The notes under the pieces: generated by a model
Told to the model about the DNA's origin: nothing
Databases searched by the model: none
Seen by the model: the letters and a program-made list of their open reading frames with translations, nothing else
Shown: positions 7,453 through 29,468 of the stretch, one piece after another
How the letters are laid out: each line of letters opens with the position of its first letter
Numbering within the stretch: position 1 is the stretch's first letter
DNA from: Dimorphilus gyrociliatus
Taxonomy: Eukaryota; Animalia; Annelida
Assembly (NCBI GenBank): GCA_904063045.1
Contig: CAJFCJ010000019.1
Span: 3,723,409 to 3,787,408, forward strand
Direction: 5' to 3'
Length of the DNA stretch: 64,000 nucleotides
Position numbers and translations under genes: made by a program

Positions 7453-10400
7453 TTACCAAAACTTTGGACTATTAGATGTGTGTTGTTTTTTTCTTTTTTT
7501 TGTCTTCTTCTTTTCTTCTTCTCTGTTTTTCTTTTTCTTTCTGTCTCTCTTTTCCTTCCAATTATTTAATATTAATAAATAGTTATGGAAAGTATATAAA
7601 AAAGATATGTACTCTGTGTCATACAATAACAAAAAAAACTATTATCTCTTAATTGATTGCGGCGACGTCTGACTCGAAATTTGTACGCATTTTTAAACTG
7701 ACAAACAGATTAACGTCATAACGTAAACAAAGTGACTGACAAGCTGACGGAATTCATGTTTACTCAGACAGCTTTTTTACGTTCGAGTCATTCCATTAGT
7801 TCCCCTCCTATCCAACCACCCACAGGGCGTTTACGCCCTGAGGTTCAAAGGTCGACGGGCAGCAGATCGCCACGCGCACGCTCTGACGGATAGTGTATAC
7901 TTTTGTCGCCTTGAACCTGTATCGGGGCATATTTTTTTCTATTTGTCTCCTCCTCCTTCTCTCTATCTTTCACACGCAAACAGATTGACGAGATAAGAGA
8001 ATAAAAAAAGAGTAGGTAAGAATGAACAAAGCGTTAACAATAAGATGACTGATTAAAAATTGGAGAAAAAGCCTTAAAAGACGAGTAAATGAGATTCAAA
8101 TTGGTTTGGCCAATTGATTTTTTCGCCTTTTTTTATAATGGCACGCTCTGATTTCTCTTTACGACTTCGCCGGTATATTGGTAGATAAGCAAATCGAATA
8201 TTCACTATCTTTAAGTCTAATCGATTTCGAGTGACGTCTGAGCGATTAGTCGTCGTCTTTTATCTATTGATAGTCTTGCGTTAGCGTGGGAGAGATACAT
8301 GTCTGTTGTATATTAAGGCTAATGCATACACGAATACCTTTTACAATACAACTATTATACGCTATTTTATTATAATGTTTATGTAAAATAGACCTAAACA
8401 GGCCTAAATAAAAAAATTAATTTTCCAACCAAAAATTCCGCCTCCAACAATGGAATAAAAACTTATTATACCTATATAAATAGATATTTATAATTGCAGG
8501 CCGTTTACAAGCATTCAAATTTTTGGTTACGTTCTTACGTTCACACGCTCTAGGCCTATTTAAAGGTGAAAGATCATATTCATCGCCTATCTTTATATTA
8601 TTAGTTGTGCTCACTGGCGTCAATAGGTGGATATGTATTATTAGCCTAATAATCGACTATTTTGAGTGCACCCCTCTGCTATATCTTATTCTAATGTTTT
8701 TCGAAGTTGACAACAAAAACGGAAGTTTATAGGAACGCGAAGAATTTACCCTCTTTTGCGAATGTAAAACTTCTTAGCGCCCCGTTTATAATCTTGGGGC
8801 AAGAAAAAGGAATTCTTTCTTTTCGCGTGCGCTGCTCTCCCCCGCTCCCGATTATTTCTCAACTTGTTTTTCTCTCTTTCTCTCCTTTTCATTCTTTCTT
8901 TCTCTCGTTTTTTTTTCTTTATTATCATCAAGTATTTCGTGGAGAATGGAATGTATTTTTTCATTCCTTTAAACAACTATCATTGAAGAGGTTAGTAACA
9001 TTCTGAAAAGGAAGAAAAAAGTGGGTGGGGAAAGGTATGAGTGTGCCTTCTTGTGATTGGCGCGTTACGGATTAGTTCTTAATTATTCGGTCACGTTCTA
9101 TCGGAAACAGGTGTGAGTGTGAAAAGTACCGTATTTATAAGCGAATATAAACATAAACATATAATTTAAAACATTTATTGTTAATAAATCCATTTTTAAC
9201 GGCAACTAAAGAAAAATTAAAGTGTTTCTCTTTTCTTTTGAAAGTATGGCTTCCCTTTTCATTTCTCTACTTTTCTGTTCGTTTCTTCTCTCTTCTTTTC
9301 TCTCTTTTGATATCTTTAAAGAAATTTCTCTTACGTATATAAATGCGGGTCGGTAGTCGTCGATATCGACTTTGGAAATCGATCGTTAGAGATAAGCAGT
9401 TTGCCTCTTGGCCACTTTCCTTTGATCTTTACGGCAGATAAGACTTTGCGCCCCCTCTCTTAATTGTTAATTATATAGTCGCCAGATTCTTTCTTCGCTA
9501 TTGAACAGCAGGCATTCGAAACCCTATATTGAGCTATAGAAGTTGTTTAGGCCTATAATATCTACCGCTCTCCTTTAATCTTAATCGAATCGGACGGCGT
9601 AAAGGAGTAAAAAGAATATTTCATGGCGCTCACTTTCGGTTGGTTTCGGGCTCTCACAGCATGAGCTATACCGATTTGGAACTTTATGTTCGGACGACCT
9701 AGCGTTCGAGAGGTGTTCCTTAACACCGTAAACGACGGACTTCAAACGCTCCGGCGTCGACACGCTTTTTTTCGCCTCAAAGTAGTCGTTGTTCGACAAT
9801 GAAGCTGCTGTTGCGAAGAATAGTAATTCGACCGGTAAAGCAAAGCTCCGGAACAAAAAAAATAGCCTTATTTTCTCTTTTCTCCCTCAGCTATTTTTTT
9901 CAAAAGTCTTGACCACTCGCCCGATTATTCCCAATGCTCTTTTGATATCTTCCATATGAAAAATAAGACTTTTGTTTGTGAAACAGAAGAAGGAAATAGG
10001 CTCTTTTCATTTATCGCGTGTCCTATGGTCATTCTTCATAACTCGGACGCGTCTTTCCATTTTCTCGCTTGACCTTTATCGCTTTTCTCCTACATTCATT
10101 CTTTTTTTACACGGATGATCATAACCCTTGACCATTCGTAATACGATTCGAAAAGCCCCGAAAATACGCGCATTTGAACTACATATGAACTTGGAAATGG
10201 TATTTTGAACTCGCCGTAACATACTCCCCGTGGAATTAGACAAACGATATTTGGAATGTTCTTTTTTTAGCCTGTACACGCGCTCGTTTATTTAGTCACG
10301 TGATTTTTCATTATTTCTACTCAACTCTTTTTAATATATATATAAATATGCTCAAACGTTAAATTGTGAGTAGGTAAAAATTTATTACCGACATTGCCAA

Positions 10401-16812: not shown

Positions 16813-19463
16813 TTACAAATAGTAAAGTTTGTCAGCCAAATTAGATGATGGCTCGGCATGCATACTTTGACCAACCAAATAAGCGAGTCGATGAGCGTAT
16901 TGCACAGGAGCGGGAACTCGAATAGTTCCTTGCCAGTTGTAATAGAGATGACAGAGTTTATACGTTAGCCGATGAATATGATCAGGCTTAAGGTGCGAAG
17001 TGTCATAAATGACATTATAATGAGTTGGAGTTACAGTTCCCTGATTCACACTCTGAGAGACAACGAAAAAGTCATACCACTCTTGTTTTGTTACGGTTTG
17101 ATCGATAACTGTTCCTGGAGCTGGATTTCTCATAGTTCCAGAGTCGAGGAAGAATCTAGCATTGATTCTCTTTTTCACAACAATATAAGTAATCTTCGGA
17201 ACGTATGTTTCGTCAATACGTTTTGCAGCTTCAAGAAGTTGCGGAACTTCTTGTTCAAAGACAGTTTTTAGCTGTCCATCACCAACGCCATCACGGTAAA
17301 TCATGATTCTATCGGGGAGGTTCTGGTCTTTAGGATCCCTCGGTACACGGCTATAGTGTCTAAGTGCGGACACAAAGCACTGGGTGATACCGCTCAACAG
17401 TTCTTGGTGGTTGGATTGAAAGAGTACTTTAGAAAAGTACTTAGTAAATAGTTTATCGTACGAGGCGACAAATGCCCCAATGGATCGACCCTTTTTAGAA
17501 GAGTCATGGTACGAATCAATCCCAACCACCATCATGTTGCGAACTGGGATATCACAAGACCAGACACTCCCCCCTAGCTTGCAATTGATTTGGATGGCGA
17601 TTTTGGTGGCAACAGACATTAGTTTGTCGGGTTTGCTTATGGTCTTGGTCATGACGACTTGGCTTGGTATCCCTGCTTCTAAATAACAAAATTTTTTGAT
17701 CGAGTCATATCGTTCCTTACGATTGTTCGTTGCAATAACATTGACTAACTGAGTTGTGTTAGTAACATGTCGACGCAAATGTTCCATGTAGGTTGCAGTT
17801 GAATCGTTGGTCAGTTGAATTACGGTTGGTGTTCCAAAGTTCATACCAATCTGCTTAGCTACATGCTTCAATTTATCCACATAGCTGCGAGCATAGCTAG
17901 TGTCTCTGGCTGTGCAAATTAACAACCAATTTTGAATCTGCACAGGTTGCATTATCTTTTTATCTTGCATATCCCTGGCCCAGTCAGCAGTTCTGGGGTT
18001 TACCGTAAATTCTTGGTGCAAATTTACTTTAATCTTTTCCGACAGAAGCTCTCTTCCAGTCAGTTTTATGAGATCTTTTTCAATATTTAAGTTCCAGCTC
18101 TTTAATTCTTCTTGAACGCTTGGAGTGGTATGAATTTTCTTGATTAAATTTCTTAACTTGTCAACTCTTTGGTCAGGTGATTGTCTTGTGTGAATTGCTA
18201 AATCTTTCATAACACGAAAATCAGTTCGCATCTGATCAGATAATCCAGTTAGTGTGCAAAGTTCGGGAAGGAGACGTATTGGTTCAGTTAATCCTCGTCG
18301 TATGTCTTTTCGTTTCGGATTAGAAACTAAAAGGGGTTGTTTCATATCAGTTATTTCTAAATTATATTGAGTCTGGAAATATTCTTTAAATGATATCTTC
18401 TTTCCCCTACATTCGAAGGTATGAGAAGGATTTTCCTTCCATTCAATATCGTCTATTCTATAAGTTTTATTATTATAACGTGTTAAAACGATTTGACCAA
18501 TAATTTCTCGAGCCGCTATATCGTAGAAGTTTTTTGGGTTTTTTTCGTACAAGTCGTATAAAATATCCAACACCGTATCAATTCTCATCATCTTATGGGA
18601 TACCTCAGCGCATAGTAGAACATCTCTTTCATAAGGCATTATACTAGTTATATAACCTGGCCATAACTCCATTTTGTGCTGGTTCACCATAATGGGGTCA
18701 TTTGGTTGATAAAAGTGACGACCAACTTCTTTCATGTTCATAGCCGATAGCATTTTACGTTGAATTAGGTTCATCAATTGCAGAGCTGTTGGATGATTTG
18801 GAGGAATTTCTTTACGAAGGGTTACTTTCATGGTTACTTCTTCATCCCGTTTCGTTTTTGATCTCAAAATAGTTGGATTTTGAGGTAATTTTTTTGTCAT
18901 AAAAAGGATAGCACCATCGAAAGCTGAAGTTTTACCAATGATATCTTGATGTTGAAATAGCAAGGCCTTTCTAAGTTTCTTTGAGTCCATTTCAGGTTTG
19001 AATTCCACCGAGTATTGACATACCCAATTTGATGGAAAAGTGAATCTAAAAAAATTGGCCCGAAGGTTTACAGTTCTTCCAGATATCCCTTTTATTGAAA
19101 ACAAGGGTTAATTGAATTTCACTTAAAAATATGTTTATATTTACCGGTTTTATCAGCACCCGGTTTCCTAAATATGGCAACCTCATAAGGATCGGCTCTT
19201 CTTGGATCCTCAGATATGTTCGTCTTCCGCATTCGCTCTTCAATCTCAATAGTTCGAACAGGAAGTCCCGCTCCTCCTCGAACAGTTGCTCGTCCCATTG
19301 AGGCTGCTTCCTGAAATTAAATTAATTCGTGAAACAAGAAAAAAGAATGAAATGGCATTCCACATACCCCACTTGTGCTCTCTTGGCTTGGATGAGGAAC
19401 GGCATCTCTATCTGCTTGTCCACGTGCTCGTCCACGAGCGCGTCCACGTGCACGGCCAGTCAT
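16813..19463 (-). CDS. piwi: Piwi-clade Argonaute (PIWIL1-like)
   Basis: Exons 19368-19463 (MTGRARGRARGRARGQ..., like the PIWIL1 N-terminus), 19145-19310 and 16813-19088. PAZ, MID and PIWI domains are present with the D-E-D-H tetrad (GIDSYHD, NHQELL, YRDGV, YAHRLA) and terminal LYYL. Confidence 0.98.
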
Positions 19464-20425
19464 TGGCTGCAAAAAGTGACCTAGTTAATGACTGATGAAA
19501 ATGGTTTTAAAAAAAAACAACTAGATTTTGGTATTGTGCAAATGTTCAGTATTTAACAATAATGACGATAATGTTAAATATTAGCTGTCTAGCTACAAGC
19601 ATACACTGTTAACTTGCGTAATGGCATGTCAGCCATCTTGTTAGTGTTGTAAATTAAAAACTGAAATATCTCTAGATATCACATTAACTTTACGCTATAT
19701 TTCATGTTGAAGGAAAAAGTTGAGGATACAGAAAGTAAAGAAGCTGGTTAGGCCAATATGCTTCTAGATAGTAACTCTCCAACCTCATAGTTAGTTGCTA
19801 TAAGCATTAAATTAATTAAAAGAAAGGTGCAATTATGTAATTGCAGTTAGAAATATAGCAGGTGTCAAGTACTGCTACCCCTAAGCCTTACCTCTAAGTC
19901 AGTAACAACTGTAGAATGTAAGTAGAATTGAAGTTGATTTTTGCTTAGATGTTCTTCAGTTGGACGAACAGTTCAAAGTGACTAAGCATGGAGAAAGTGT
20001 GAAAGCCATGAAAAGACATTTGCTTTAGGGCACTAATCACACTCAAGATAATATCCTAATTGGTAGATAACCAATCAGCTTTGACAATTTGACTTTTTAA
20101 GCCATGCTGATTGGTTTATAGAAACAGTACAATTTTGAACATTTCACCCCTTTTAAGCATTGTCTTTGGGTGAATACGCCATTTCTATAATTTGACCTTT
20201 TTGACCTCTAATGAGCGTTCAATGTCATAAACAAACTTCATTTAAGTCTTTTTTCAAAAAAACAAACTAGTGTAAATGATGCTAAGTTTCATACTCTTTC
20301 CAATAATAACTTTTTTATTGAAAAATATCTTATAATATAAGGATAACTAGTCCAAAAATATAGCGGAAAATTCCAAGGGATAGTTGTCCATTTTAAAACT
20401 TATAGGAATTTCAACAGGAACAAAA

Positions 20426-23400
20426 CTAGAAGTTTACGATTGATGGACGGTCCTCCCTTGAATCGTCTCTCGTTTTTGTAGATAATCTGCGCCTAACATC
20501 GAATTTTGAATTTGACTTTATCTTCCATTTGTTGTTGTCCATAAAATAGGTGTTCTGTGTTTGTTAGTTGAAATATCAATTTTTATGATTAGCCTACGAA
20601 TTCAACAATTTACAATAACTCCGGTTGCGCTACTTTGTAATCCGTCTCCTCTTTGAAATTTCAAATCTTCCCTGTCTTTCGTCAAAGCATAAAACGCCTC
20701 CGATACATGTATCATCATTGATTTACCAAGGGCTTCTAGTTCGCAAACCGTCGATACGGTATCTCCCACTAAAGTGTACTTCGGAGACTTGCCTCCTTTC
20801 TGACCTAAAACACCCGCAGTAACTGTTCCTGAATGTAATCCGATTCGAATTGCAACCTGTTCTTTGAGACCTTCAATCTGAAATATACAGTATATATAAA
20901 GAGTATATATAGGGTTTTAGTTTTGTAGCTATTATTATTAAATACTAGATTTTCTATACCTCAAACGTTTTAGTCCAATCCCTTATTTTAATCGACATAT
21001 CTGCAATGAGATGTGCGTGACGCTGATTTTTTATCGGTAATCCACTCGCAACCATATAAGCGTCTCCGACAGTTTCCATTTTGAAGGCTCTAAACTCAGT
21101 AGTTATTTTATCAAATCCGCTATATAGATCGTTCAGCATAGCCACCTGATACCAGGGGATTTAGTTAAAAGCTAATTAAGTTATTATTTAATTATCCCTA
21201 ACTTACAACAGTGTTTGGGGTATTTCTGGAGCATAATTTAGTGAATTGAACAATATCGGAATAGTAGAGGCTAACTGCTTGATATTCAACTGGAGTGATA
21301 TGGATCCCTTTCTATATGATTTAATAATCTCAATTTGTATAAAAACTAATTAATTACTTTATTCTTCTACCAATAAAGCTTCTGCTGTTGAATGAGGTAA
21401 GAGCGATTTTAACAACTTATCTGCCTTATCTTTAGCATCTTTAGCCTCTTCAGTCCTCTTCCCTGTCAACTCTTCCAAATTATCAGCATACCTACTCAGA
21501 TACAGGAAAGAGTTCGTCATAAAATAGAAATTGATTCTTATAATGCAGCTGACTTATCGAGTTTGCTTGTAATTATGTCCATAATATTCAGCTTTCTTCC
21601 GCAGTTAATGGAATTTATCCTTTTGACAACCACTCTGGCCTCTGGCCTGTCTGCTGGCTCTTCACTCCAGCATTTGGACATGACACGCATAACAACCTGT
21701 GATTTAAATTGGTTTATTAGTGTTATTTTCTATTGAAATGTCTTCTGGCAGACATCCAAACGATTTTCGGGGATGGGAAGTGTTTCATTCTTCTTATCGT
21801 CGATACTATCTGACATAGGTTTGAGCTCACCGTCCATTTTCCTAAAAATTGGTCTGTACGGATTAGGGCCCCCTAGTTTTACTGCTTCAACCGTATTTAT
21901 AATGTCCTCAGATTGTAGGGGCGATGGTAGGAAAAACGGTTCGGCTCGAAATAGAATGCATTGCATAAGTATAGCTAAAGCGTAGACGTCAGCGTCTTGC
22001 GTTCCGTAACGAAAGTTTGCCCTTTCGTCAGTTGTCATTCGTAAAATCTCAGGGGCAACCCATAAATCCGCAGGCCTAAAGTGTTAATTTTTTTCGACTT
22101 CGCCTTTAAGAATATAATAAATTTTAACTTACTCAACCTCCTCTACTTCATTCAAAGGAGGGGTAGAATCTTCCTGCATCCTATCTCTTTTGTTTTTGGC
22201 AAAGAGTTTTTGTTTCCGTTTAGCATCAAAGAAACTATATAAGCCATATAAAGTAATCTTAACAACCCAACGGTCATCGACAACGCACGAATCGTAGTTT
22301 AAAGAACCGTGTTTACCCAATGCTGAGGAGTGAATATAGTTTAGGCCATTTGACAGATCCATTACAAAAGATAAGCGGAAAGCAAGGTCGAGTTTCGTTT
22401 CTTTAGCGTGTAAGACTCGTCTCAGAGTTCCTTTTGGAGAGTGTAAATATAAAGCATATATTCCCGGATAGGTTACAGTAACACCTAAAAACGGACAGAT
22501 ATTGTCGTCTTTCATAAGTTTCATATGTTCTAGCTCATCGCGATCTTTGTCAGTTAATTCAATATCAATGTTACGAAAGGAGACAACATCTACAATTTCA
22601 CCCCTAAAAATGGCCGTCTACAATGTTGAAACTTGATAAGTAATTGCAAAAAAATTTCAAATATTATTCTCTTTACCCCGAAGCTGCTATCTGTTTTAGG
22701 TAGTCTTCTATCCAATATATCATTAGGATCTACTTTCCAAGTAGACCTTTTTAATCTTTCTCTTTTTAAGCGATTCTGATTCAACATATATGCAAAGAGG
22801 CATAAAATCAGAAAAACGGATGTGGATATGATAAAAACTTTGTTTTGTTAAAAGGGAATAAAAAAGATTTATTCAAAAGGAAAATGGAAAAAATTGAGAA
22901 GGTAAATATACCAGTTGTTCTAGTCAATTCCAGTTTATTTTTCTCACCATCGATCCTAATCGATTTTGAAACTGGAATAAAATTATCTGGTCCAAGTATA
23001 CAATTGTTATTAGCCCAATACAAGCCCAAGTCCTCCACTTGAATCTCGTCCCTACAAACGATAATAACACTACATCGATTATAAACAACCAAGTGCCCTA
23101 ATCTCTATTGATAAGATTATTTTAAGAGCGTAAGCAAGTATCTCTCAAACAGAAAAGAAGAATAATAAAAGGAAAAGTAAAAGAAAAAAAAAACGAACGT
23201 CTCGGTGAATAAGAGTCTCATGCCTATTTTACCGGCCACCTCTGTTGGATTGAAGGACCATACAACATAATCATAAACGACGTTACCGTTCCCATTTATC
23301 CTTATTGATTTATTTAGCGGCGGGCTGTAAAAGGAGGTATTTGCGATGCGGTTTAGAAAATTCCCATTTAGTTTATTTTTTTCCGATCTATTCATAATCT

Positions 23401-24926
23401 GGCACATAATTCGTGCAGCATTGTAAGAATACACATTTTCGGCTGGTAAGGGAATTTTCTTTTGCCTAACATTTTCAAATTTGTAAATGGACAAATGTTG
23501 AAAGGTTAAAATAGACATTTTTAGAATAAACCATAAATAATAATTAACAATTAACATTTATCTATTACCTAATCCCTTCGAGGATCTTCCCATCTATAGT
23601 AGTATTTTGCCAATTGCTCAAATTGTATAATTTACTCACGTACTTTCTCAATATAGTGGATTCGAAATCTGAATAAGTCGTAAAATTCTCAATACCTATC
23701 ATTTTCAGAGAACTATAATGTCGGCGGATTTCGGGCTTATTCGCTCCGTCGATTGGCCAAGGACGGAGAAAGTTTATTGATGGTTTCAAGTTGAACGCTA
23801 TCTGATTTTTGTCAGGCAATTGTTTATATTAAATTTAATATACTGAATATAACTTACTAATAAATAGTCTGGTGCTGAGATACCCAATTTTAGGGCAACT
23901 TGCATTAAAAACCTTAAGAGTTTGTTTGATGTACAAAATATCAAAAGACGAATATGAGATAGAGCTACTTTTAATTTATGAGATATCTCAGTTTCGTAAT
24001 ATTCGCTAGATGTAGACATATATTGAGGGAACTAAATAGAGGAAGAGGAAGTAGATTATATATAACAATAGATAGATGCAATTTGTTAATAAACTGCCTT
24101 ACTAAGCTATATTTCGTTCTAATTTACTTATTTTATACAAATAATGGGTAACATTTCAACTCGCCTCAATTTCAACTAAATTAATACTGCGCTTTCCCAA
24201 TAGGAAGTTGATTTCATCACTTCGAATATCGCATCTATTTCTCTCGCGAATAAATGCTGCCGTTTCAGCCCAATTACAAAGCTAATAATTGAATAAATCC
24301 TAGATTGTTCTTCAATGCATATTATTTGCTTATATGAATAAAGAAAAAAATTGGCAAACCTTTAGAAATTCTACCAATATACGACTTAATTGAAAACTTG
24401 AAGGAAATCCTTTAATCAAAGACCTGAACGTATTCTTGTCATCCGAAACATAATCACTCAAGCCCAAAGCCATAAGAAGACTATTCGTTGGATTTCCGAT
24501 TGAATATAATAAAGCAGCTTGACTAGATTGTCTACAAATAGGTCCAAAAAAGAGCTTTAAATGCTTTTTTTCAATAAACACCCTCGTATTGTATTCGTTC
24601 CCAATACAATTCGACTTTATGAAGAGTAGGCGAATATTTATTCTCTTTTTGCTAGAACACACAAGAGAATGAGAAACATCTTTATTGTAAAAAAAAAGGC
24701 GCTTTGTATGTATAGAAGATGGGCAAAAAAACCTAATAATTTCTTCTTCGTAACACTTGTCAATTCCGTATAAAAACCCATATCCTATCCTCTCCCAAGC
24801 TCCTTTATTACTTATTTTTCGCATATTTTTGACATCATCAGGTAACGTTATACCAATATTTATATTTGCAGTTGTCAAAATCCGATAGACTTTAATAAAA
24901 ATCACGACTATTGTTGAGAAACGCAT
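20426..24926 (-). CDS. Receptor-type (membrane) guanylyl cyclase with degenerate catalytic domain
   Basis: Multi-exon gene: signal peptide MRFSTIVVIFIKV (ATG about 24926), ANF-receptor-like ectodomain (FFGPIC), TM VFIISTSVFLILCLFAYML, kinase-homology domain (HGSLNYDSCVVDDRWVVKITLYG, LWVAPEIL, CWSEEPADRP), hinge YADNLEELTGKRT...LLPHS, and cyclase domain (YSDIVQFT, KMETVGDAYMVASGLP, IRIGLHSG, KYTLVGDTVSTVCELE). Last exon 20426-20554. Confidence 0.92.
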
Positions 24927-25708
24927 CAATTGTGATTTTTCTATCTGTTTCACTCAGCTCTGTAATTATTTATATGGTGAAAATTTTTCTTTTTCTCTTT
25001 TCTTTAGTATAAGAGCAAACAATGATACAGAACCTTTTTTCTTTATAGCGTCTCTTTTTTTATTATAGTTTTTCTTGTCCTTTCTTGTAGGACTGGAAGT
25101 TGTAGTTGACCTGATTATTCAGCCAAGAAATAGCAAATTATATTAATGTATGGAAATTTATCTTTATTCAAGGACAAATTTTTTTTTTCTTTTAAATTAT
25201 TCATATTTTTTTTATTTACAAGTTGTTCTATTTGAATATTTTATGGACCTTTACTTATGTTGGGGTTAACCTTTTCTTTTATTATTTGAATCAATAAAAA
25301 ATACGTTTGGAGATGGAGAGAGAGAGAGAGAGAGAGAAATACAGACGGAGACACAGAAAGAAAGAGGGAGTAACTTGAAAATTGCGTTACGAAATATGTG
25401 TCAGCTTTGTTTTCTTATTTTTATTAATGACGTTCCGTGTTTTCCTTACATAAAGGCTTAATAAAAAAGAGGTCGTTAATTATCAGTATAGAAAAGATAA
25501 GATAGTTTCGAACGCTGCAGTTTCATTTTCTCTCCTAATTAGAATATTTTTCCTGATTTATAATAAATATATCATAAATTTTTATAAAGAAGAACTAATA
25601 TCCGATTCTTTTTTTAAATAACCAATCAACATCAATAATTAGTGTTGGACGGAAATTCGATATTTGATTGAATTTTTTGTCTGGTGTTGCCTAATTTATT
25701 AAAGATAG

Positions 25709-25709
25709 G

Positions 25710-25741
<32 letters not shown>

Positions 25742-25755
25742 TAGAGATAGAGAGC
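25709..25755. repeat. (GA)n microsatellite; a shorter GA tract lies at about 25316-25337
   Basis: Directly visible gagagaga run. Confidence 0.9.
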
Positions 25756-26051
25756 GAAAGAAACATTATTAAAAATACGATAGCTTTTTTAAATTAAGAC
25801 TTTTATTGCCGAAGTTTATTTATTTAGAACCTAATTTAAATATAGATATGATTTTTATTTGTTCATTAGTTTCCAATAAATAAAGAGCCAAAAATTATAT
25901 TTTCATTTAGAGTAAAAAATAAAAAATAGGGAGAAACGACTGAAAATGAAAGCTTCGAATGCTTAGTCGCCTGAATACTCTATAAAGCAGTCTGAAAAGC
26001 GTGAGCAATTTATCTATGGATAAGTCTTATTCGTTAATAGCTTATTTTTTT

Positions 26052-27734
26052 TTAGCTTTCACTAGTCCTTGATGAATCGCATAATCTTAATATGAAGTCA
26101 GTTTCATTTTCGTAAACACTATTAAATTTAGATTCAAAATCGTCTGCTTCATCTTTGGATTTCGTTAGAGTTTTCAATAGATTTCTTAATTCATTTTCAC
26201 ATTGAGATTCGGTTAGAGTTGCAGAATTCTTCGATAACGGTTTTTCGATTTCGTTTTGTAACTCAGGTTCAGGTTCGGGTTTTTTTTCGGATTCGTTTTC
26301 ATCAATACTTAAAAGCTCTTTCATCATATCGTCATACGTATACTCATCTCCAGCTTCGTCCTCTAATTCTAAGCTTTCGTCTTTCTTATCCTCTATTTCC
26401 TGAGAAACTTCATCGGCTGACTTTTTCAATTCGCTCAAATTTAATTTATCATCTGCTCTGCTCTCTTCTTCAACTCGACGTTCCAATTCTAAAAAGTCAT
26501 CCAAATCTGGCGAAAGACATCCAGAAGCGGTAGTAGTCGATTCATTTTTGCAGTCTTGAAATAATTTAAGCACATTTTCGTAAAAGGCATCATTGTTTAT
26601 CCAGCTATGGCTGCAGGCTTGTAAAAGGGTCAACCTCTTAGAAGCACGAGGATTGAGAAGTCTAGTAATCAGATTATGAGCACCAGAGTAAAATTCAGGT
26701 TCGGAAAATTGCCCCAAAGTAATATTTTTTTTAATCTCGTCGAATTTATCACCCGAAAAAGGCATGTTCCCATAAACGAAAGTATACAATATTACCCCCA
26801 AACTCCACATGTCAACCTATTCGAATAGAAGAGAATAGTATAATTCCTATTTGCGTTTATACGATTTTAAGTTGTATTCACTATTCACCTCAGGTCCTTC
26901 GTATGGAATACCATTAACTATTTCTGGAGAAGAATACAATGCACTTCCGCAGAAGGTTGTTAATTTTTCTTCGCCAAAACTATTAGCTAGGCCAAAATCG
27001 CAAATCTGAGTAGATATTTACATATAAGATTTCACTCGAGAGGAAAAAAATCTGATATTTTTTTAAACACTTACTTTTAATTGATGATTTTCATCTAAAA
27101 GTAAATTCTCAAGCTTTAAATCCCTGTGTACAATGCCCTCCTGTAAGCGGTAATTTTACACTTTTTCGAAATATTGACCAAATACTTACGGAATGTAAGT
27201 AGGCTAGCGAAGAGAGGAGCTGTTTGAAGAAATAACGAGCGTCGTCCTCTTCTAAACGACCTTTCTCTTCTATTAAATCGTAGATCTCACCTCTAGCAGC
27301 CAACTCGAGTATAATAACAATATGATTGTCAGATTCAAACACTGAAAAGAGAATTTCCATAACGAATTATTGAACAAAACCAAAAGAGAATTACTACCTT
27401 CAATCACTTGTAATATGTTTTCGTGTTTTAGCGCTGACATAATCTCAATTTCCCTATAGATTCTTAGTAAATCTCGTTTGCCTCCCGTTTTCTCTATATA
27501 ATTTTTATCAATAATTTTCATGGCACACTGTTTTTAAAAAGAAAAAAAGATTTTCTTATAACTTTTTAAAGAAAAACTATAAAAAATAACAGAGATCAAA
27601 TTTATTTTATCTCTTACTTTTTCACCCGAGACTTTATTTACGGCTTTATAAACTGTTCCTGTTGATCCGATTCCCAACTTTTTTCCTACTTCGTATTGAC
27701 TCAGTAATGACTTACGTTCAACAGCCTCAGCCAT
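26052..27734 (-). CDS. NUAK/ARK5-like AMPK-related Ser/Thr kinase with acidic C-terminal tail
   Basis: Spliced exons give [91 protein letters not shown] and PEIVNG.PY.GPEVD are NUAK-family signatures. Confidence 0.85.
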
Positions 27735-29468
27735 ATTTTTTAACGGTTCAAATTATTGTAATAACTTAATGATTGTCAAATACTTTGTAGGAGTGGAATT
27801 CCTAAATATATCCCTATTAGATGAGATGTATATGTTGTCGACTTCAAGTGTTTACACTTTGAAAATGATATGAACAACAATTAAATCGAAAACGGAAACG
27901 GAAATTCCTGTTCAAACGTTCACTACCGGTAAGAAACCGGTGCCAAAAATTGAGCCATACATTTGAAATGCTAGGGGATTAAAGACGGTATAAGTTGTCT
28001 GACTTTAACATCAAAAATCGATAAGAAAATCAAATAAAATCGATAAAATTTTGCGATTATTATTCAGATAGCGTGATACAGTAACCAGCGAAAAAATGCT
28101 TACAAAAATTTAGGTTCTAATGAGGGGTTAATTAAAGGCGACATGGAATTTTTTCCATATATAAATAATTACTAGTTGTATTCGTGCTAAGTGTGAAAGG
28201 ACCGAAAGAGAAATTGCCTCCAGAGACTAAAAACCGCATATGCAGCCCAGGAAGAGTAGCAGAGCGAATAGAATCCAATATTAGATAAAGTCGTATTACA
28301 AAAAGAATAAGAAACAATGCGCCGGCTCATTCACAATAATACACAAGAAATTGATCTGGTAGGCTTTATTGGCTTTGTCTTCTGGAATTACGTTTGGACG
28401 GGCGGAGGTCATGAGAGCAGGATACAGTGTTCGTATAATAGGCCTAAATCGTGACGTCATTGGTGGATTCCCCTCCAGTATATAAAAATGGCGTTGTAGG
28501 TGCCTCGCGCGTTCAAAACTCTACGTCGCTCGTCACGGATCGATCAGGTAATAAATCGGTTTATTAATCGAACTTTTGCGACAGTAAATGGTAATTTCCT
28601 TCGGTATTTGCTTCCATATATTTACAAGCCCGGTGGCTTTGATATACGTGTTGCGTGCGGGAAAAAATAGTTTAATTGAATCATCAGTACAGGTCGTTTC
28701 ATTCTTTAACGGGTGTGTACAATAATAGATTTATTCCGGTTACTCTATAATACTATATTGAATCGGTTTGTAAATTTTTTTTATCTTACGTAATTTAGTT
28801 AACAAGTTGACTGGTGTTGAGTAAGATCCGCCACTTTTTAAAGGGAAAAAAGTGATGCGTTGCAGATGTAAATAAAAAAAACTATTTAAACCTTTAAGAG
28901 GCGCCTATGAAATAGAAGCCAGGTACATGGGAAGTTTTTGTTTGTAACACTAAGAATGCTTTAGACGCCTTTCGGCTATGATGTATTAGCCAGGAGAAAA
29001 TGTCGCATGGTTTGATTAATTAAAGGCATAGAAACGTCAGTTGCGTCTCTAAAGCTTAATATTTCTTGTTAGTAGCGTAACAGTTTGTCGATACGGACTA
29101 TGGATATTTAGTAATTATATCGAGGCGTATCTAATTGCTGCCTGACTCGTTTCTAATGGCGAAAGGACCTGATAAAATGTGTTTTTGGTTTAAAACTAAT
29201 CATTAGGGGCGTCGAAATTTTAAACGAGGTTTCGATATGAAGGTCTTCTATTTCTCTAGTACATTCTCTTATTAAGATTTTTGTCACACCAAACCGTATA
29301 AGAGAATAAAATTGTGTGTAACAGCTGCATCGTTAAAAAAAAATGAGAAAAAAAAAACTAAAACGCATATGCAACAAACAGTGATACGGATGAAAAGAGT
29401 ACAGTCTAATCGGTCAACATCTCTCTAATGCAGCGCAACGAGTGTGTTAATTTCGTTAATGTTTCAGT

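Follow-up and report, generated by a model that had tools for sequence, protein, structure and literature searches.

What does a receptor guanylyl cyclase do when only one of the two faces of its active site carries the expected residues? The question is raised by a gene on the minus strand of a 64,000-nucleotide stretch of the genome of the annelid Dimorphilus gyrociliatus (assembly GCA_904063045.1, contig CAJFCJ010000019.1, positions 3,723,409 to 3,787,408; hereafter the window, numbered from its first letter, with a G+C content of 35%). The gene has 16 coding exons, an ATG at 24926 and a stop codon at 20426-20428, and codes for a receptor guanylyl cyclase of 1,110 amino acids. The active sites of class III cyclases form at the dimer interface from complementary faces of two subunits (PMC6592433), and we propose, with a probability of roughly 0.5, that the worm protein is a receptor guanylyl cyclase subunit of the type represented by adenylyl cyclase C1 and the alpha chain of soluble guanylyl cyclase (sGC), predicted to need a partner that supplies the Asn and Arg.

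Seven catalytic residues are recognized in these enzymes: two metal-binding Asp residues, an Arg for the gamma-phosphate, a Glu/Cys pair for the base, and the transition-state Asn and Arg (PMC6592433). The worm protein keeps four of the seven (both Asp, the phosphate Arg and the Glu), and the three that are changed all lie on one face. The motifs YSDIVQFT and ETVGDAYM carry both metal-binding Asp residues and the base-specifying Glu, and IRIGLHSG retains the gamma-phosphate Arg. The degenerate motif, QKGGKSPKYTLVGDTVSTVCELEA, contains a Thr (20773-20775), a Ser (20752-20754) and a Glu (20740-20742). HMMER alignments to sGC beta-type and rhodopsin-guanylyl cyclase chains, together with a multiple alignment (A1), place GDTVSTVCELEA under the canonical Asn/Arg motif, with Asn replaced by Ser and Arg by Glu; in the HMMER alignment to solved cyclases and in A1, Thr takes the place of the Cys that precedes the LFGD strand, and a 3-residue insertion follows the GVxG strand. 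The V-KGKG of canonical enzymes is replaced by LQSSATG, with loss of the Lys, which belongs to the same face as the Asn and Arg. The metal/phosphate face is complete, and the opposite face is altered at four of its five positions (Cys, Asn, Arg and Lys), with the Glu alone being kept.

An initial annotation of the region 20614-21310 had described such a half-active site from three motifs, and these lie on the minus strand where it had placed them, within coding exons 13-15 (21311-20614). The changes that it listed (Asn to Ser, Arg to Glu, Cys to Thr, and a short insertion, here of three residues) are borne out by the HMMER alignment and by A1. It was also right that the metal-binding Asp residues are kept, but its grouping of the Glu with the Asp pair does not stand, as the Glu belongs functionally with the Asn/Arg face (PMC6592433).

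The gene is organized as follows, with the transmembrane segment abbreviated TM, the kinase-homology domain KHD, and amino acids aa:

25034-25100, minus strand: 3′ end of a non-coding 5′ exon (contig joint 24959 to 25034, GT..AG; the examined stretch ends at 25100).
24733-24926, minus strand: coding exon 1, aa 1-64, with the start codon (24926-24924) and a hydrophobic N-terminus that resembles a signal peptide, both of which are kept in the orthologue.
24360-24651, minus strand: coding exon 2, aa 65-162, ectodomain with FFGPIC...LSD (contig joints; 73 of 97 residues identical to the orthologue).
24165-24281, minus strand: coding exon 3, aa 163-201, ectodomain (3′ boundary inferred, GC donor; the frame requires an intron).
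23858-24031, minus strand: coding exon 4, aa 202-259, ectodomain (contig joints; orthologue alignment).
23569-23801, minus strand: coding exon 5, aa 260-336, ectodomain (downstream intron 23568-23466 inferred; the orthologue aligns on both sides).
23199-23465, minus strand: coding exon 6, aa 337-425, ectodomain (contig joints; orthologue alignment).
22912-23051, minus strand: coding exon 7, aa 426-472, ectodomain next to the membrane, where conservation is lowest in the gene (16 of 45 residues identical to the orthologue, 8-residue gap).
22677-22837, minus strand: coding exon 8, aa 473-526, single TM helix and basic juxtamembrane stretch (hydropathy; joints 22837 to 22912 and 22775 to 22912).
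22133-22617, minus strand: coding exon 9, aa 527-687, N-terminal and central KHD (PF07714, E 1.4e-11; 139 of 161 residues identical to the orthologue; 83% identity to protein P0151).
21754-22075, minus strand: coding exon 10, aa 688-795, KHD C-lobe (Pkinase, E 0.0019, sub-threshold; 95 of 107 residues identical to the orthologue).
21554-21696, minus strand: coding exon 11, aa 796-842, end of the KHD (weaker kinase match; contig joints; orthologue alignment).
21371-21491, minus strand: coding exon 12, aa 843-883, coiled coil or hinge (signalling helix) (C-terminal HNOBA match, E 0.0049, sub-threshold; 40 of 40 residues identical to the orthologue).
21207-21311, minus strand: coding exon 13, aa 884-918, in which the cyclase domain starts (PF00211, E 1e-4; aligned with GC-C and rhodopsin-guanylyl cyclase), with the first metal Asp at 21255-21257 and, at 21246-21248, a Gln where DIVGFT usually has Gly.
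20960-21145, minus strand: coding exon 14, aa 919-980 (PF00211, E 1.4e-14), with the base-specifying Glu at 21074-21076 and the second metal Asp at 21062-21064.
20614-20877, minus strand: coding exon 15, aa 981-1068 (PF00211, E 9.9e-13), with the phosphate Arg at 20845-20847, the insertion within 20805-20776, and LQSSATG at 20640-20620.
20426-20554, minus strand: coding exon 16, aa 1069-1110 and the stop codon (joint 20554 to 20614, GT..AG; one contig extends 243 nt further, with a 3′ untranslated region to about 20312).

The 1,110 codons form a single open frame across the 16 coding exons, and the exon that holds the ATG also has an in-frame stop upstream of it. Transcript evidence comes from the contigs of one public run (X1, the library kind of which is not on record) placed on 20500-25100. 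These contigs skip 14 listed short segments of 56-147 nt, all of which have CT..AC ends on the plus strand and are thus GT..AG introns of the minus strand; the run therefore behaves as RNA, and the cyclase gene is real, expressed and spliced. Exons 13, 14, 15 and 16 are joined in a single splice path by one X1 contig. The stop at 20602-20604, at which the raw open reading frame (ORF) ends, was considered as the C-terminus and rejected, being intronic: the contigs splice from 20614 to 20554, and the exon so reached supplies NTYFMD, the last strand of the cyclase fold, and a basic tail. Two further introns are absent from the listed joints. One, 24164-24032, is inferred from the frame and appears to have a GC donor (GAG/GCGAGT), and the GCGAGT donor after coding exon 3 is identical in a related species (at about 8839-9101 of its contig, L004, described below); the other, 23568-23466, is deduced from the reading frame together with GT..AG ends.

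There is some variation in splicing along the ectodomain and TM exons. Intron 23568-23466, which contains a stop, is kept unspliced in one transcript contig, reflecting either intron retention or pre-mRNA, and the 81-nt intron 24732-24652 is in frame and stop-free, such that its retention would add 27 residues to the ectodomain. An alternative acceptor at 22775 shares the donor at 22912 with the main acceptor at 22837, at contig depths of 15 and 34, respectively, although depth in these contigs is not readable as an expression level. When the 22775 acceptor is used, 62 nt that include the TM helix are lost and translation continues out of frame, reaching a stop 17 codons later. This predicts either a protein consisting of the ectodomain without a TM segment or a target of nonsense-mediated decay.

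Pfam, Protein Data Bank (PDB) and homology searches were all run exon by exon. Exons 13, 14 and 15 match PF00211 at profile positions 5-32, 32-93 and 97-164, all above the 21.9-bit cut-off, and among solved structures exon 14 is nearest to the receptor cyclases GC-A and GC-C, with which its ETxGDAYMV block aligns (E about 1e-12). The best hydrophobic window, a 19-mer with a mean Kyte-Doolittle value of 2.13, lies at the start of exon 8 and is followed by a basic stretch. The ectodomain of about 470 residues, coded by exons 1-7, is an open, conserved reading frame; exon 2 alone matches ANF_receptor, weakly (E 0.021; 14.3 bits against a 25.4-bit cut-off), and in these single-exon searches the other ectodomain exons had no Pfam match and none of the ectodomain exons had a solved relative in the PDB. 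The predicted protein is a type I membrane receptor with an ectodomain, one TM helix, a KHD, a putative coiled coil and, after these, a class III cyclase domain. The initial annotation had called the signal peptide, ectodomain, TM, KHD and coiled-coil hinge intact; the TM, KHD, putative coiled coil and cyclase domain are found together in one open 1,110-codon frame, and the ectodomain is likewise open, with its ANF_receptor match remaining sub-threshold.

The degenerate face would be of little consequence if the gene were decaying, and comparison with a related species bears on this directly. An exhaustive search of 1.8 billion representative proteins with exon 15 identified a 100-aa fragment (P0001) with 90% identity, which is encoded on the genomic contigs L001-L003. 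The first ectodomain ORF, used as a query, then pointed to a 22-kb contig from another run of the same series, L004, which carries a complete syntenic orthologue in which all 16 exons align and are open. Nei-Gojobori counts of non-synonymous (pN) and synonymous (pS) differences between the two species' genes are as follows:

Ectodomain, exons 1-7: protein identity 65%, pN 0.20, pS 0.50.
TM and juxtamembrane region, exon 8: protein identity 79%, pN 0.124, pS 0.761.
KHD, exons 9-11: protein identity 88%, pN 0.065, pS 0.765.
Coiled coil, exon 12: protein identity 100%, pN 0.011, pS 0.627.
Cyclase domain, exons 13-15: protein identity 94%, pN 0.031, pS 0.75.

The gene is under strong purifying selection, which is strongest in the coiled coil and the cyclase domain. 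The pN/pS ratio is 0.19 overall, 0.40 in the ectodomain, 0.085 in the KHD and 0.04 in the cyclase exons, and because synonymous sites are saturated in most regions, the value of 0.04 overestimates the true dN/dS. The 31-codon segment running from AGVLGQ to ELEALG differs from the orthologue by 19 synonymous changes and no non-synonymous ones. Together with the low pN/pS, this argues that the degenerate half-site is maintained by selection and is not decaying. Relaxed selection had been named at the outset as a finding that would undo the half-site interpretation, and the comparison speaks against it: pN is 0.031 against a pS of 0.75 in the cyclase exons, and the two species share every residue of the degenerate motif. 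A further finding of this kind would have been an alternative exon with the canonical residues, but GDT[VIL]N was found in no frame of the 64-kb window, and one splice path runs through exons 13-16.

The neighborhood of the gene is also shared with the related species. A Ser/Thr kinase gene, the receptor cyclase, a Piwi gene and an ERG4/ERG24-type (LBR-like) gene lie in the same order and on one strand at 16816-27750 of the window and at 5143-18640 of L004, and this synteny is kept although synonymous sites are saturated. The ORF directly downstream of the cyclase gene (16816-19104, minus strand) has 763 uninterrupted codons and codes for a Piwi-clade Argonaute with Piwi_N, PAZ, Mid and Piwi domains (Piwi domain, E 9.5e-95).

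A word search with exon 15 found P0001 alone, and the five best-scoring matches to exon 15 after P0001 are 43-47% identical. Exon 14, which codes for the metal face, is about 58% identical to GC-C (by a count from the alignment), as against at most 56% for exon 15, such that the two exons have diverged asymmetrically. P0151 is the KHD exon of a relative (sample ERR14224704), with 83% identity to exon 9. None of the checked matches with a replaced Asn and Arg is a KHD-type receptor; they are two-domain cyclases and a rhodopsin-cyclase. In the two-domain proteins P0002, P0004 and P0018, the metal-keeping second domains have Ser or Gln for the Asn and Lys, Thr or Ser for the Arg, and they have no KGKG. 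The gene looks lineage-restricted and fast-diverged, with a catalytic domain that appears to have converged on a C1/alpha-type half. A six-frame pattern scan of the window for GDT[VIL]N and other cyclase motifs found no other cyclase. Among the relatives is a 910-aa protein, P0032, that carries a complete carnitine/choline acyltransferase domain in addition to a cyclase domain with the degenerate motif GDSVSTASRI, which might reflect an unusual fusion or two merged gene models.

How might a half-site subunit work? Given that the sites of these enzymes are built from complementary faces of two subunits (PMC6592433), a homodimer of the worm protein would have two crippled sites, each without Asn, Arg and Lys. 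If its coiled coil joined it to a receptor cyclase with Glu, Cys, Asn and Arg in place, the resulting heterodimer would have one working site, composed of the worm protein's own Asp pair and the partner's Asn and Arg, and one degenerate pocket. The ectodomain and KHD of the worm protein would add regulatory inputs to such a heteromeric receptor.

This proposal draws on several observations: one face is kept and the complementary face is degenerate, in a pattern that is under purifying selection; the residue pattern resembles that of the metal-keeping domains of P0002, P0004 and P0018; exons 14 and 15 have diverged asymmetrically; the gene has an open frame and is expressed and spliced; and receptor cyclases of Caenorhabditis elegans, described below, offer a precedent. 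Its main rival, which we consider possible but clearly less probable, is a non-catalytic pseudo-cyclase, the domain being kept for dimerization or nucleotide binding and the protein acting either as a dominant-negative or decoy that silences complete cyclases, or in cGMP-independent signalling through the KHD or interactors. Several points weigh for the pseudo-cyclase or against a half-site subunit. Three of the seven catalytic residues and the KGKG Lys are lost, as a pseudo-cyclase would allow. With Glu in place of Arg, the charge at this position is reversed and not simply lost, which could mean that the pocket has taken on a new function. Nearly every residue of the cyclase domain is conserved between the two species, without the catalytic Asp and Arg being singled out, and this two-species comparison therefore cannot separate a heteromer subunit from a pseudo-cyclase; conservation that is uniform over the domain and strongest in the coiled coil is expected for a structural or dimerization role, and would fit a non-catalytic function equally well. 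A deeper orthologue was not found, with nothing beyond P0001 exceeding 56% identity to exon 15 among the 1.8 billion representatives. The Gly of the phosphate-binding DIVGFT loop is replaced by Gln, which may weaken the intact face and would suit a pseudo-cyclase. As proof of a dead metal face, this substitution was rejected: 36 of 125 DIVGFT-type motifs of the retrieved cyclases have a residue other than Gly (Ser, Asn, Gln, Lys, Asp or Phe, and mostly one of the first four), and a solved, active rhodopsin-guanylyl cyclase has Asn at this position. On this alignment evidence, we do not count the Gln as a defect. The frameshifted transcript coding for a TM-less ectodomain would be compatible with decoy-type biology. 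What a pseudo-cyclase explains poorly is that both metal Asp residues, the phosphate Arg and the Glu are retained despite the divergence of exon 15, since a pure scaffold needs none of them, and that its catalytic residues follow the pattern of the functional, metal-donating halves found in natural heterodimeric cyclases. The half-site reading, of the adenylyl cyclase C1 or sGC alpha type, is supported by these comparisons, which would be compatible with any of the three outcomes offered for it at the outset (heterodimer, dominant-negative modulator and cGMP-independent signalling).

Another alternative is a homodimer that is active by itself, with a rewired active site. The Ser and the Lys residues of the QKGGKSPK insertion would then partly replace the Asn, Arg and Lys, giving low-rate or differently regulated production of cGMP or, given the Cys-to-Thr change, of another cyclic nucleotide. 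The Ser does retain a hydrogen-bonding side chain, the insertion adds two Lys beside the base/phosphate pocket that are perfectly conserved in the related species, and the motif is very strongly constrained, with no non-synonymous change in its 31 codons. We nonetheless think this improbable. When this Asn or Arg is mutated in C2 of mammalian adenylyl cyclase, kcat falls by one to two orders of magnitude. Across class III cyclases, it is the Asn/Arg pair that stabilizes the transition state (PMC6592433), and a Glu in the Arg position should repel phosphates. Among the 150 best relatives, there is no known active cyclase with such a combination of residues, and where similar motifs occur, they belong to degenerate halves of two-domain enzymes. 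In a related and similarly doubtful alternative, the degenerate face, with its Ser, charge-reversed Glu, Thr and Lys-rich 3-residue insertion, would be a conserved new pocket, used either for non-canonical catalysis or nucleotide binding in a homodimer or as an allosteric site in a heteromer. The residues of this face and the insertion are invariant across a saturated synonymous divergence, and in transmembrane adenylyl cyclases (tmACs) the forskolin pocket is an allosteric regulatory site; if this were true, the cyclase-like domain of the receptor would serve to sense a nucleotide and not to make one. Decay of the gene, or a gene-model artefact in which the canonical motif sits in an unrecognized alternative exon, is very improbable. 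The raw ORF does seem to stop early, at 20602, and two introns lie outside the listed joints, one of them retained in a contig, but the apparent early stop is intronic in an open frame of 1,110 codons over 16 exons, GDT[VIL]N is in no frame of the 64-kb window, and the orthologue has all 16 exons, each of them open, with a cyclase pN/pS of 0.04. Decay and artefact are thereby refuted as far as sequence can refute them.

To our knowledge, every receptor guanylyl cyclase of mammals is a homodimer in which both sites are complete, and we know of experimental support for obligate heteromeric receptor cyclases in one nematode pair only. A half-site subunit in the worm would be a clean case of this division of labor in another animal lineage, being expressed, strongly constrained and apparently of independent origin. 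If the heteromer reading is true, it would suggest that cGMP sensing is repeatedly diversified by pairing receptor cyclases in different combinations, and it would provide a small, tractable set of subunits with which to study the assembly and regulation of heteromeric receptor cyclases.

The predicted arrangement is already known from nematode ODR-1/DAF-11, from sGC alpha/beta and from C1/C2 of the tmACs, and as a sequence-based prediction the worm protein introduces no new mechanism. Among nematode receptors, other Caenorhabditis elegans GCYs were reportedly predicted to be obligate heterodimers by Morton in 2004. Some C. elegans receptor cyclases, including several GCYs, lack complementary residues, with each monomer thought to give essential residues to a single site, and the intracellular domains of ODR-1 and DAF-11 restore signalling only when expressed together (PMC5225109, PMC8045692). 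Like ODR-1 and DAF-11, the worm protein is a single-pass receptor with a KHD, a putative coiled coil and a cyclase domain, and a subunit without part of the catalytic set. Unlike them, it comes from an annelid and not a nematode, and it has no detectable orthology to them (exon 15 is 43-47% identical to its five best-scoring non-orthologous matches and to none above 56%). Because there is no detectable orthology, the loss of the half-site in the annelid gene probably arose independently of that in the nematode receptors.

Receptor cyclases pairing as two different subunits are also found in chytrid fungi, where the rhodopsin-guanylyl cyclase is a heterodimer of RGC and NeoR (PMC12264004). Both systems are receptor-linked class III guanylyl cyclases, the heterodimer being a feature of RGC/NeoR and a prediction for the worm protein, and P0129, a rhodopsin-cyclase among the matches, has Thr and Lys in place of the Asn and Arg. 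The chytrid sensor, however, is a rhodopsin rather than an ectodomain and KHD, and it belongs to a fungal lineage without orthology to the worm protein.

The likeness to sGC alpha is in the division of the catalytic residues: one subunit gives the Asp pair and the other the base-recognizing residues and the Asn and Arg, with one site and one degenerate pocket per dimer, and solved sGC alpha chains match exons 14 and 15. However, sGC is cytosolic and has H-NOX and PAS domains, whereas the worm protein has an ectodomain, TM helix and KHD; and unlike sGC alpha, the worm protein keeps the base-specifying Glu, with exon 14 being nearer to GC-A and GC-C than to sGC. The C1 domain of the tmACs and the metal-keeping domain of two-domain protist cyclases (such as GC2 of TgATPaseP-GC) similarly keep the Asp pair and the phosphate Arg, with the Asn and Arg replaced and no KGKG Lys (PMC6592433), and the Asn-to-Ser change of the worm protein is the same replacement as in domain 2 of P0004 and P0018. 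In those enzymes, the two halves are fused in one polypeptide; in the worm, by contrast, the half-site domain stands alone on a single-pass receptor, and its predicted partner would therefore have to be a separate gene product.

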